Of a stretch of DNA of 64,000 nt, positions 12,609-47,327 are shown piece after piece. Location: sequence record MN563784.1; one strand, 5' to 3'. Both the position numbers and the translations under genes were made by a program. The notes beneath the pieces were generated by a model. It saw nothing but the letters and a program-made list of their open reading frames with translations, did no database searches and was not told where the DNA came from. Every line of letters begins with the position of its first letter. Position 1 is the stretch's first letter.

Positions 12609-12941
12609 ATGCAGATTCAATTAGATCCATTAATGGTTTACCATGGTAGCACTAGATCTTTATTTAATGAAGATTCTAGTTTAAATGTTGTTGATGTAAG
12701 GGGCATTCAATTAAATGCTGAAGGGATAGCTGATAACAAAAATTACTATTTTGATTATGGACGTAAGAAAGATGATGATGGTGAAATACTCACTATTTAC
12801 GTACATGATCGAAATGTAGCTAAAGATTTTATTGTACTGTACGTTGAATTCCATTTAGGCACACATAAATTTCATACGTATGTACATCCACAATATCGGC
12901 ATAAATTTCCAGTATTAGTACTGGAGTTATTATTCGTTTAA
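12609..12941 (+). CDS. hypothetical protein
   Basis: GAGG RBS. Confidence 0.75.
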   Translation: MQIQLDPLMVYHGSTRSLFNEDSSLNVVDVRGIQLNAEGIADNKNYYFDYGRKKDDDGEILTIYVHDRNVAKDFIVLYVEFHLGTHKFHTYVHPQYRHKFPVLVLELLFV

Positions 12942-42714: not shown

Positions 42715-43155
42715 ATGAAAGCGTTCATCCCAAAATGGCGCCAAGACCCAAATAACGTTGACCATAAGTATGGTTATGAACTGAATGCATACACCTCTGT
42801 TTCTGGTACTCGCGTCTTCATCGAACGTCGTGTTGAATACTACAATAAGAAAAAGAAACAATGGTGCGATGAAACAATTCAAGTAATTCATCTTGGTAAA
42901 CTGAATTGTTATATTTGGAAACACTATCCAGTTATCAGTTTCAGAGATGTTGGTGTAATCTACGGTCGGTTAGAATTTGATGAACTAAAGAAAGTAAATA
43001 AACTTATTCAGAGTTCAAATTCCGTATCTATTGAACTGATGGAATCTATTTCAAAAGAATATCAGGTTTATATCACAGCTGTAATTAATAACATCAAATA
43101 TGTGTTCAGCCCTGAACGTACTTATGTATCTGATGAGGGTTACGTAGATGACTAA
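42715..43155 (+). CDS. hypothetical protein
   Basis: AAGGA RBS. Confidence 0.8.
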   Translation: MKAFIPKWRQDPNNVDHKYGYELNAYTSVSGTRVFIERRVEYYNKKKKQWCDETIQVIHLGKLNCYIWKHYPVISFRDVGVIYGRLEFDELKKVNKLIQSSNSVSIELMESISKEYQVYITAVINNIKYVFSPERTYVSDEGYVDD

Positions 43156-43609
43156 AGCAACTACTAATATCGTAATACAAGAGAAGCTTAAAGAACTCCG
43201 TCATAATAGTGATTGGATGTATTACATGACTTCCCAGTTCACTAACTGGATGTCAATGACTCCAGGTGCACTGAATTATAAAAACAACATGACACCAGAT
43301 GAGTATTACGAGCATCTGGTAACTTGGCGGGTGATGACTGAGGATCTAATCCGAGTTCGTAAATCAATTGGTATCAGTATGTCAGGTATGATTAGTGATA
43401 CACTAACACATCTTGATGTAAATGAAGTAATGTGTGAGTTCAGTGTATCAGCTAAACTACGTGTTCATCGCAATCATTGGAAAACCAATATGCTTTACTT
43501 GGGTCTTGACTGCGGTGATCATCTATGGCGTCCTAAAGAACGAGTATTCGTAGTTGGTCAAACGGAATGGTCTCGTTTCCGCGATGCTATTGTCAATGGT
43601 GTTTACTAA
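43148..43609 (+). CDS. hypothetical protein
   Basis: GAGG RBS. Confidence 0.8.
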   Translation: MTKATTNIVIQEKLKELRHNSDWMYYMTSQFTNWMSMTPGALNYKNNMTPDEYYEHLVTWRVMTEDLIRVRKSIGISMSGMISDTLTHLDVNEVMCEFSVSAKLRVHRNHWKTNMLYLGLDCGDHLWRPKERVFVVGQTEWSRFRDAIVNGVY

Positions 43610-43641
43610 GTGATTCCTTTATGTATTTAGGATAATTAAAA

Positions 43642-44154
43642 ATGGCAAAAACACTCCGTGTAGTACGTGTCCGTGATGGGATCGTTGATAGTCTTAATAA
43701 CGATGGTCTATGGGTTAACAAACATACCTTTTGTATGGAAGAGGTATGGGAAGCCCACAAACAAACAACCCAATTCCAGTCTTACAACTGGGGGACTATG
43801 TACTTCGTTAGTGAAAATGATGTAGCATGTAATCCATATCCTCATCATCAATACCGTGAAGTATGGATCTGTCAACGAGGTGTGCAACAAAAACTAGAAC
43901 TATGTGAGGATTTAGAATCCGGTATAGTTGGGGATGATCATGTTGTAGTTATTATGACTACCACGGATGGATTAGATTATAGTTTTGTGAGTGGTGTGTA
44001 TGGCGACCGTATTAACTACAGTCCTTACTATGGTGATGCCATTTCTATACCTTGTACCAATAATCAAGAAGCAGACGATGTCTATCATATTCTAGCTAAA
44101 ATGGCTAATGGCATAAGTCTATCTGTTCCTCTAGTAATGAAGCTGATTAAATAA
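43642..44154 (+). CDS. hypothetical protein
   Basis: AGGA RBS. Confidence 0.8.
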   Translation: MAKTLRVVRVRDGIVDSLNNDGLWVNKHTFCMEEVWEAHKQTTQFQSYNWGTMYFVSENDVACNPYPHHQYREVWICQRGVQQKLELCEDLESGIVGDDHVVVIMTTTDGLDYSFVSGVYGDRINYSPYYGDAISIPCTNNQEADDVYHILAKMANGISLSVPLVMKLIK

Positions 44155-44970: not shown

Positions 44971-45486
44971 ATGAATAAACCAGAATTACTTTACCATGGT
45001 TCTCTTTATAAACAAGATGAATTAATGCCAGGATTTAAAAGATCTGGTGAACTTGTTATGTGGGATGGTATTGAGTCTAACCAATACCTATATGCAACGT
45101 CATCTGAAAAAGATGCATCTTATTTAGGTATTGGTAGCGCTATCGAAAAGTTATTTGATAGTGATAGATATGCTACTGTTGATAGGGATATTACAATCTA
45201 TTGTCAAAATAATATCGATAAAAGTGATATTTTAAAAATGGTTGTGTATGTTTATACCATTCCATTTAGGGACTCTGACAAATGGATTAAGAATAATAAT
45301 CCTCACAATAGCATTGATACTGAGTGGATTACGAAAAACACTATCCATGATGTTACTGTAAGGAAATTAGATATTGGTGAATTTTTAAAAGGTGCTCGCT
45401 TAACTGTCACTAAAGCACCAGTGGATGTTGATCCATTAAACATCATGTCACAATATCGTTCAGTAACAGAGCGTTATCTGTTTTAA
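44971..45486 (+). CDS. ADP-ribosyltransferase-fold protein (H-Y-E pattern)
   Basis: LYHGS, YLYATS, YVY, TEWIT. Confidence 0.55.
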   Translation: MNKPELLYHGSLYKQDELMPGFKRSGELVMWDGIESNQYLYATSSEKDASYLGIGSAIEKLFDSDRYATVDRDITIYCQNNIDKSDILKMVVYVYTIPFRDSDKWIKNNNPHNSIDTEWITKNTIHDVTVRKLDIGEFLKGARLTVTKAPVDVDPLNIMSQYRSVTERYLF

Positions 45487-45501
45487 TTAAATAGGTTAAT
45501 T

Positions 45502-45966
45502 ATGTATCACATATCGACAGTATACCTTGGGGATTATGTTTTATTAAGGCCATATATTCCAAGTAATAGAGCTGATGGCGAAGACAGTGTAACCAACCGT
45601 ATATGTGTGGCCCCATCAGTTATTGAATGTATTGCAGCTAAAAGCGGGAGTTATGATATCGATCTTAATTTACTTGGTTCTAAATCAACTATTTACGCAT
45701 ACCGAAGTAATTCTACTGACTACATTATAGGAAATGTACCTGATCAAAAACAATATAGGGAACACTGGTATTTAAAACCAACTTTATTTGCGTATGTTGG
45801 CTCTCTGCAATTATTAGAGACTGGGGTGATTAAGGTAAGTAGTGAAGTCGATATGCATTCTAAATTAATGGTATCACATCGGTTAAACTACTTCAATAAT
45901 ATTATTAGTAAAGAAGAACTAATACACCATTGGCATATAGAGGCTTTATCTATTTTAAATGGTTAG
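45502..45966 (+). CDS. second ADP-ribosyltransferase-fold-like protein
   Basis: YHIS, RICVAPS, IYAY, EHW. Confidence 0.5.
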   Translation: MYHISTVYLGDYVLLRPYIPSNRADGEDSVTNRICVAPSVIECIAAKSGSYDIDLNLLGSKSTIYAYRSNSTDYIIGNVPDQKQYREHWYLKPTLFAYVGSLQLLETGVIKVSSEVDMHSKLMVSHRLNYFNNIISKEELIHHWHIEALSILNG

Positions 45967-45969
45967 ATC

Positions 45970-46000
45970 ATAATTTATTTAAGATCTATATTACAAGTGT
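45970..46000 (+). promoter_or_regulatory. early promoter
   Basis: aatttatttaagatc-TATATTAC (45987-94). Confidence 0.75.
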
Positions 46001-46425: not shown

Positions 46426-47298
46426 ATGGCACGTCGTTCTAATAAAATTCGTATTGGTTTTAACGTATCGCTTAAAGCGCTTGAACGAAATGGATCTGAT
46501 GTAATTAAACTACATGATGACATCATATCTTGTTTTAGTGAACTATATCAAAATTACGTAAAAATTGATACAACTACTGACAAAGATGACAAATCACTAA
46601 AACAAGGCATTATTGATGTCGTGGTGTATGTCGATCTAAATACAGCGAACCAAGCCATTCGTTTTAAAGGTATTAGTGATCTGGTAAACCATCTACAGTT
46701 TAATGTAATGGCGAATGATGTTATCGTCGATACAAGTGAATATATTCAGCCTAGCCATATGTCATATATCGAAGATGGTCACCTGAATATGTTAGTGCGT
46801 CGAGAAGGTAAAGAGGTTATCAAAACCATTTTCACTGATGAATATGGTGTTGATCCACTAGTTAATAATGGATCAATAGGAGATGGATGTAGTGTTTCCG
46901 GGATCTATCTAATCGGTGAAGAAAATCGGGTTAATAAACTGGCACGTATTGTTTCTAACAACATTCGCAACGGAGAGTTTAATTTCAAGACCGAAATAGG
47001 TATCCGTAAATTCTATTGGAGTGTACTCGGAAAACCAAGTGCGCAATTTAAGTATATCCACAGTGTGGTATTTAAGTACATCCACAATGAAATATGGAAC
47101 CGTAATAGTTTCTATGTGGATACACTGATTAAGCTAACCAATGGCAAAGTTTATAGCTATGCTAAGAATGGTTTTGTTGGTGGACCTACTGAACTAGAAT
47201 TCCATTATTATGGTGTAACTGATCGAGAAAATTGGGATAATGCGTCAGACAATTTCCTATATCAGGAATTCGAGCAAAGTTGGTCTGTAAAAATCTAA
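46426..47298 (+). CDS. hypothetical protein, tandem paralog of 47355
   Basis: M.RR start; IYLIGEENRVNKL vs LTVFGERSKVNYV; KNGF/KNGY. Confidence 0.85.
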   Translation: MARRSNKIRIGFNVSLKALERNGSDVIKLHDDIISCFSELYQNYVKIDTTTDKDDKSLKQGIIDVVVYVDLNTANQAIRFKGISDLVNHLQFNVMANDVIVDTSEYIQPSHMSYIEDGHLNMLVRREGKEVIKTIFTDEYGVDPLVNNGSIGDGCSVSGIYLIGEENRVNKLARIVSNNIRNGEFNFKTEIGIRKFYWSVLGKPSAQFKYIHSVVFKYIHNEIWNRNSFYVDTLIKLTNGKVYSYAKNGFVGGPTELEFHYYGVTDRENWDNASDNFLYQEFEQSWSVKI

Positions 47299-47301
47299 TA
47301 C

Positions 47302-47327
47302 ATAAAGGGCTCTTCGGAGCCCTTTAT
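47302..47327 (+). terminator. intrinsic terminator
   Basis: 11-bp stem, TTCG loop, T tract. Confidence 0.85.

Follow-up and report, generated by a model that had tools for sequence, protein, structure and literature searches.

What do two adjacent genes of a phage closely related to Pseudomonas phage phiKZ encode, and do they act together? The genes lie on the + strand of a 64,000-nucleotide stretch of sequence record MN563784.1, called the window here. The initial annotation, made from the nucleotide sequence, had read them as a tandem pair of ADP-ribosyltransferase (ART)-fold genes and had placed both open reading frames (ORFs) exactly (Table 1). Several phiKZ-like jumbo phages of Pseudomonas aeruginosa match the 3 kb around the pair at 100% identity, and tblastn identifies the two ORFs as orthologs of PHIKZ282 (100% identity) and PHIKZ283 (99.4% identity), hereafter gp282 and gp283. 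phiKZ is the model nucleus-forming jumbo phage, with ~370 genes of which most are without known function. These two are no exception: their orthologs in the phage records listed are all named hypothetical or mislabelled, and the families to which they belong, phrog_13483 for gp282 and phrog_25542 for gp283, are both of unassigned function. Our results make each of them a new sequence family within a known kind of enzyme, outside the curated ART families by sequence.

Predicted folds

Scans of gp282, gp283 and their family members with Pfam, NCBIfam and PADLOC matched no model, and phmmer and profile searches against the sequences of the PDB gave chance matches only. Searches of the nearest phage genome for DUF6886, Arr-ms and PTS_2-RNA matched neither protein. 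The first of these domains had been hinted at for gp282 in the ESM Atlas, a hint that the genome-level search did not confirm.

Structure prediction points to an ART fold in both proteins. The AlphaFold2 model of gp282, built from a 31-sequence alignment, has a predicted local distance difference test (pLDDT) score of 93.5 and a predicted template modelling (pTM) score of 0.86, and describes a stand-alone ART-fold protein with an H9-Y41-E118 triad and a C-terminal β/α extension (residues ~125-171). When this model was compared with the PDB using Foldseek no match was significant, but the list of weak matches is dominated by ARTs (KptA/Tpt1, Arr, pertussis toxin, ParT, cholera toxin, TreX/TreTu, pierisin and RES). 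Matches among predicted viral structures (BFVD) include proteins named Arr, DarT, PolyVal ART and RNA 2'-phosphotransferase.

The model of gp283, from a 62-sequence alignment, has an overall pLDDT of 79.4, with values of ~90 for residues 1-115 and poor values for the C-terminal 40. The N-terminal ~115 residues form a minimal ART-fold domain and the C-terminal ~40 are phiKZ-specific. In a second structure search ARTs made up 32 of the 33 matches listed. The ESM Atlas puts gp283 close to an Arr-ms cluster (score 0.95) and, on structure, close to DUF3990 and to clusters with GNAT or ankyrin-repeat fusions. The predicted split β-sheet ART core superposes on solved ARTs and, as the match lists obtained with the two models consist almost entirely of ARTs, the fold first proposed for both adjacent ORFs is well supported by the modelling. 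Catalysis and targets, by comparison, are what we infer for the two proteins.

Conserved motifs and sequence families

The motifs quoted in the initial annotation are all found, in gp282 as LLYHGS (residues 6-11), YLYATS (39-44), VYVY (92-95) and TEW (117-119), and in gp283 as MYHIS (1-5), RICVAPS (33-39), IYAY (64-67) and EHW (87-89). Their key residues are conserved within each protein's own family and they are therefore not chance strings.

A word-indexed search retrieved 46 homologs of gp282, mostly from metagenomic contigs of up to 309 kb, and 31 sequences were aligned. Relatives of gp282 occur in phiKZ-, PhiPA3-, 201phi2-1-, Phabio- and Noxifer-type Pseudomonas phages and in two Erwinia phage records. 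Every one of the 29 sequences covering the region has H9 and G10, and 28 of them have S11, while W31, D32, E35, N37, Y41, S56, E59, Y95, N108, N110, N113 and E118 are invariant in the alignment. The features of the His-Tyr-Glu (H-Y-E) clade, namely a strand-1 His within H-G-S/T, an aromatic residue in strand 2 and an acidic one opening strand 5, are thus all seen in gp282, where H9-G10-S11, Y41 and E118, invariant or nearly so, fall on model strands 6-11, 40-43 and 118-121, respectively. On the strength of its sequence, LYHGS is predicted to be the NAD-binding His-Gly-Ser/Thr signature of H-type ARTs. We infer a catalytic role for E118 from its place in the modelled fold, where ARTs hold their acidic catalytic residue.

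The gp283 family proved larger. The word-indexed search found only gp283 itself, while an exhaustive HMMER search produced 179 cluster representatives at E <= 1e-3, nearly all of which match residues 1 to ~105. The family is mostly phage-borne. Its members occur in unrelated phages, with P. putida phages of ~200 kb, a fragment of a gut phage and numerous metagenomic phages among the sources, and some are fused to a GNAT acetyltransferase or to ankyrin repeats; one sits inside a protein of 1083 residues that also holds a GNAT acetyltransferase domain. Among the 62 aligned sequences the strand-1 His and the strand-2 Arg and Cys are conserved as given in Table 1, as are S/T5 (60/62), Y67 (61/62), D81 and E87 (62/62 each) and W89 (60/62); C43 is likewise conserved, in 59-62 sequences.

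gp283 agrees only partly with the H-Y-E pattern: its conserved H3 and E87 fit, whereas strand 2 has R33-x-C35 and the His is not followed by Gly. Its family alignment describes a variant, H...R-x-C...Y...D...E, with a conserved Cys in the strand-2 'Y' slot, and not a textbook H-Y-E protein. The preference of the initial annotation for H-Y-E over the Arg-Ser-Glu (R-S-E) class is accordingly borne out by the strand-1 His of both proteins and by the invariant triad of gp282, but not by the Cys in the Tyr slot of gp283.

Comparison with known ADP-ribosyltransferases

The closest likeness of gp282 is to the RNA 2'-phosphotransferase Tpt1/KptA, a family with a catalytic Arg-His-Arg-Arg tetrad, and specifically between its N-terminal ~130 residues and the NAD+ (nicotinamide adenine dinucleotide)-binding lobe of that enzyme. 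BLASTP aligns residues 4-53 of gp282 with residues 100-141 of E. coli KptA (pairwise E 0.039), and a comparison by hhalign of the gp282 family with a KptA profile of 94 sequences picks out the same block (pairwise E 9e-4, probability 23%). Both methods align LYHGS and YLYATSSEKDASYLG of gp282 with LYHGT and YVHLSADEATARKVG of KptA, so that H9 falls on the His in LYHGT and Y41 on that in VHLS. This sequence connection would be weak taken alone, but it agrees with the structural ranking. An equivalent hhalign comparison of gp283 with the KptA profile gave no match.

The differences are nevertheless considerable. Tpt1/KptA has an N-terminal RNA-binding lobe that gp282 lacks (the match runs from chain residue ~88 to ~181, from model residue 1), and at the second and third positions of the triad gp282 has Tyr and Glu where Tpt1/KptA has His and a hydrophobic residue. 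The C-terminal extension of gp282, of ~45 residues, further sets it apart. With neither that lobe nor a match to PF01885, gp282 does not group as a member of the Tpt1/KptA family.

Phage T4 encodes mono-ARTs, Alt, ModA and ModB, that reprogram the host and so provide a functional precedent (PMC7824862). They belong to the R-S-E class, defined by a strand-1 Arg, a strand-2 S-T-S and a strand-5 E-x-E, whereas both proteins here have a strand-1 His and a single Glu; nor are the T4 enzymes found as sequence matches or top structural matches to either. The setting differs too, phiKZ being independent of the host RNA polymerase.

Pertussis- and cholera-type A subunits are also R-S-E enzymes with a strand-1 Arg, where gp283 has His. 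In the structural alignments model residue 1 of gp283 is paired with residue 5 in cholera/LT A1 and with residue 7 in pertussis S1. We take the strand-1 Arg of these toxins to be R7 and R9, respectively, and these offsets would then put H3 in the slot of that Arg. Sequence identity between gp283 and these subunits or TreX/TreTu, the Rhs C-terminal toxins, is 8-17%. Unlike these toxins, gp283 is phage-encoded and presumably cytoplasmic and has no immunity or delivery partner.

Arr, the rifampin ADP-ribosyltransferase, acts on a small molecule and uses Asp as its acidic residue. There is no match of gp282 or gp283 to the Arr HMM (hidden Markov model; PF12120), the likeness being confined to the fold and embedding levels and, while Arr modifies an antibiotic, nothing hints at an antibiotic substrate for either phage protein. 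Similarly, neither matches ART-PolyVal (PF18760; cut-off 31.2 bits), for which one gp282 homolog scores E 0.072. AcrIF11 and ART-PolyVal are small ART domains from phages or mobile elements engaged in conflict with the host, as gp282 and gp283 may be, and the 1083-residue GNAT-bearing relative of gp283 resembles phage polyvalent proteins in its architecture.

A separate observation concerns the PHIKZ222 ortholog (12609-12941, + strand, 110 residues), which begins ...LMVYHGST. It provides the only match to ART-PolyVal in the phage genome, below threshold at 13.4 bits and E 0.017 (E 0.056 in the Pfam scan). Beyond the YHGS motif it has no similarity to gp282; the match may point to a third ART-like protein, of very small size, or be due to chance.

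Independence of the two genes

Adjacency immediately raises the question of whether the two proteins form a functional pair, as had been suggested with gp283 in the role of regulatory partner. Apart from the motif order common to both, they have no detectable similarity to each other (BLASTP E 12; hhalign probability 1%). They are side by side only in phiKZ-like phages. The gp283 family profile detected no gp283-like ORF beside the gp282 homologs in three loci (PhiPA3 and two metagenomic jumbo-phage contigs), and at these loci the neighbours of gp282 homologs have no BLAST-level similarity to the phiKZ neighbours. Equally, relatives of gp283 occur in other phages without gp282, and their contexts contain no recurring partner gene. 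Across the genomes compared there is thus no conserved co-occurrence of the kind that a two-gene toxin/regulator or enzyme/partner module would display.

The suggestion of a regulatory role is not supported: gp283 keeps its own conserved polar residues, belongs to a separate and wider family and is absent beside gp282 homologs at the three loci. Its conservation pattern, as read from the alignment, is enzyme-like and not that of a degenerate partner. The two proteins are probably not a functional pair, and are best regarded as evolutionarily separate, stand-alone ART-fold proteins that lie side by side by chance in phiKZ-like phages.

Possible activities and targets

On balance, and with moderate confidence, we favour gp282 and gp283 being two separate stand-alone enzymes that would transfer ADP-ribose to a host or defence macromolecule. 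Each would bind NAD+ in the cleft formed by strand 1, with its His, and strand 2, the invariant Glu would stabilise the oxocarbenium intermediate, and a single ADP-ribose would be moved to the target in the infected cell, in parallel with Alt, ModA and ModB of T4 and with the anti-CRISPR AcrIF11. The proposal in the initial annotation that the phage ADP-ribosylates proteins, RNA or defence factors of the host is a reasonable one. From the predicted fold and the retained catalytic residues, phiKZ probably modifies host molecules chemically, and the two candidate NAD-dependent modifying enzymes offer testable handles on its manipulation of the host or evasion of defences. This matters since the phage can do without the host RNA polymerase, on which phage ARTs classically act.

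According to published surveys, ARTs are encoded by jumbo phages of all groups, and more than 40% of jumbo phages have one (PMC7824862, PMC9503650). Our literature searches found no paper that names PHIKZ282, PHIKZ283 or PhiPA3 gp341, or that calls these or other orthologs ARTs, although survey supplements lay outside their scope and an earlier listing is possible; nor did they find a published activity assay for either protein. Recognition of the gp283 family (at least 179 clusters at 50% identity, and not in Pfam, NCBIfam or PADLOC) as ART-fold would annotate many phage genes.

As to the targets, proteins would be likelier than DNA. In phiKZ infection of cells without DarTG2 there is no ADP-ribose signal on DNA (PMC13309987), making DNA an unlikely target and indicating protein, RNA or small molecules instead. 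The mild acidity of the proteins (isoelectric point, pI, of 5.4 for gp282, with a family median of 6.3, and 6.1 for gp283) fits protein targets weakly better than nucleic acids. As phiKZ has RNA polymerases of its own, the targets may plausibly be factors of host translation or metabolism or, as with AcrIF11, host defence proteins.

Several points weigh against two such transferases. No ART family HMM matches gp282 or gp283 in full Pfam scans, and genome searches with PF01885, PF12120, PF18760 and PF21820 matched neither. The catalytic residues are assigned only from strand positions in the models and alignment offsets. For gp283, the lack of Gly after the His and the Cys at the usual Tyr slot mean that its chemistry could differ. 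Finally, since phiKZ transcribes with its own RNA polymerases (PMC10914365), the host polymerase is less compelling as a T4-style target.

A narrower and less likely possibility is that one or both proteins serve anti-defence, ADP-ribosylation disabling a specific host immune complex, as AcrIF11 does with type I-F CRISPR, in place of a general takeover. Members of the gp283 family turn up patchily, in the accessory regions of a variety of phages, and are present in phiKZ but not in PhiPA3, which is the usual pattern of counter-defence genes, and AcrIF11 (6kyf) is among the structure matches of gp283. The phage also already has an NAD/ADP-ribose counter-defence gene, the macrodomain protein AdfM (gp104), which strips DarT2-made ADP-ribose off phage DNA (PMC13309987).

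With regard to such genes elsewhere in the genome, a Pfam Macro search of the nearest phage genome gave a single match, outside the window (G001:C1:199140-199493, 30.4 bits). This is probably PhiKZ gp104, a factor similar to DarG2 and published as acting against DarT. No NADAR domain was found in the same genome.

We think it unlikely that the proteins have the ART fold but are no transferases, acting as NAD+ glycohydrolases or phosphorylases in the manner of RES, MbcT and NatT, or as sponges for immune signals derived from NAD or ADP-ribose. Structures of RES, MbcT and NatT are indeed among the matches of both models, the proteins are small with no obvious target-recognition domain, and sponging of nucleotide signals is a known phage strategy. 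Yet the best matches are transferases (Tpt1, Arr, TreX and the pertussis- and cholera-type toxins), an invariant Glu and His are typical of catalysis and not of mere binding, and depletion of NAD+ would also hurt a phage relying on host metabolism.

The resemblance of gp282 to Tpt1/KptA suggests a further alternative, in which it would act on nucleic-acid ends, ADP-ribosylating 5'- or 2'-phosphates of RNA or DNA and thereby, for example, marking or protecting phage transcripts or blocking host RNA repair. This appears distinctly improbable given the missing RNA-binding lobe, the Tyr and Glu in place of the His and hydrophobic residue of Tpt1, the failure of the PF01885 HMM to match, the acidity of gp282 and its family and, again, the clean DNA of infected cells. 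An equally long shot combines this idea with a second one: gp282, which occurs in part of the lineage of nucleus-forming phages, would be a stand-alone NAD lobe of the Tpt1 type in which a catalytic Glu has been regained, and would ADP-ribosylate nucleic-acid phosphate ends or a cytoplasmic translation component, while the gp283 family would be minimal phage ARTs with an H/R-x-C/E site and a chemistry of their own. If true, gp282 would represent a new pathway of ADP-ribosylation, specific to phages, that controls ribosomes or the fate of RNA in a phage keeping transcription and translation apart, and gp283 would stand for a family of minimal phage ARTs that is large and has gone unrecognised.

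That the fold assignment is an artefact, with small α/β proteins only superficially resembling ARTs and motifs that coincide by chance, is very improbable, as ARTs account for very little of the PDB and even so fill nearly the whole match list of two independent models, the conserved residues lie on those strands that carry the catalytic residues of ARTs, and an independent embedding search also returns Arr for gp283.

Start site, genomic context and expression

The ATG at 44971 is upstream of the start given for PHIKZ282 in RefSeq (NP_803848.2 in NC_004629), which is placed at record position 256608 and corresponds to Met19. The 18 residues before Met19 are conserved at the protein level in homologs of only 40-65% identity, so that the upstream ATG is the real start and the RefSeq product is without the strand-1 His. 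Two metagenomic homologs (P0041 and P0042) have likewise been called from the equivalent MPGF start. A protein cloned from the RefSeq start is predicted to be a dead fragment lacking the catalytic His motif.

The neighbouring genes, gp279-gp285, are all of unassigned function. The pair is within a long block on the + strand that carries TATATTAC elements, which we presume to be the core of the phiKZ early promoter. Eight of the 12 exact + strand matches share the same AT-rich upstream context (e.g. aaatttttttt-gaaatc) and, judged by their sequence, resemble early-type promoters placed in series across the window; phiKZ early promoters are AT-rich (PMC10914365).

A Nanopore cDNA contig (44760-47293) spans both genes and ends with an A-tail nine bases before the predicted hairpin listed in Table 1, and contigs covering both genes occur in 14 RNA libraries from 6 studies. 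Being contigs, these attest to the presence of the sequence and are no proof of transcript start, level or timing.

Table 1. Positions in the window of the two genes, their predicted functional residues and the surrounding sequence elements.
Feature	Position	Strand	Remarks
PHIKZ282 ortholog (gp282)	44971..45486	+	171 aa from ATG; ORF call
N-terminal part of PHIKZ282 cut by the RefSeq start	44971-45024 (NC_004629.1 256554-256607)	+	18 residues including LYHGS
gp282 strand-1 motif L-Y-H-G-S, residues 7-11	44989..45003	+	H9 codon 44995-44997; aligns with KptA LYHGT (BLASTP, hhalign)
gp282 Y41, strand-2 motif L-Y-A-T-S, 'Y' of the triad	45091..45093	+	31/31; aligns with second His (V-H-L-S) of KptA
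gp282 E118, T-E-W at strand start, candidate catalytic Glu	45322..45324	+	31/31; strand 118-121 in model
PHIKZ283 ortholog (gp283)	45502..45966	+	154 aa; ORF call
gp283 H3 (M-Y-H-I-S), strand-1 His at extreme N-terminus	45508..45510	+	60/62
gp283 strand-2 motif R-I-C-V-A-P-S (R33, C35)	45598..45618	+	R33 61/62, C35 59/62; strand 33-37 in model
gp283 D81...E87-H-W89, E87 candidate catalytic Glu just before strand	45742..45768	+	From conservation; strand 88-90
TATATTAC with AT-rich upstream stretch	45987..45994	+	Directly after gp283 stop; downstream boundary of the pair, outside it
TATATTAC sites with AT-rich context	1307, 16833, 24776, 25208, 28282, 31946, 34631, 45987	+	
TATATTAC exact matches without AT-rich context	14727, 40717, 51926, 52543	+	
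Strong intrinsic-terminator-like hairpin	47302..47327	+	Predicted

Other features of the window

Downstream of the pair, the PHIKZ284 ortholog (46426-47298, + strand, 290 residues) matches SidC_N of Pfam, the ubiquitin-ligase domain at the N-terminus of a Legionella effector, over residues 32-220, though below threshold (E 0.0013; 18.2 bits, cut-off 25).

Upstream, 494 bp of the window (43154-43647) are missing from the phiKZ contigs of all four RNA runs, which join 43153 directly to 43648. The stretch makes up most of a 153-residue ORF (43148-43609; phrog_22402, function unassigned) and represents an insertion or deletion that differs between strains of phiKZ-like phages. There is a second indel, a small one, at 47049-47086.
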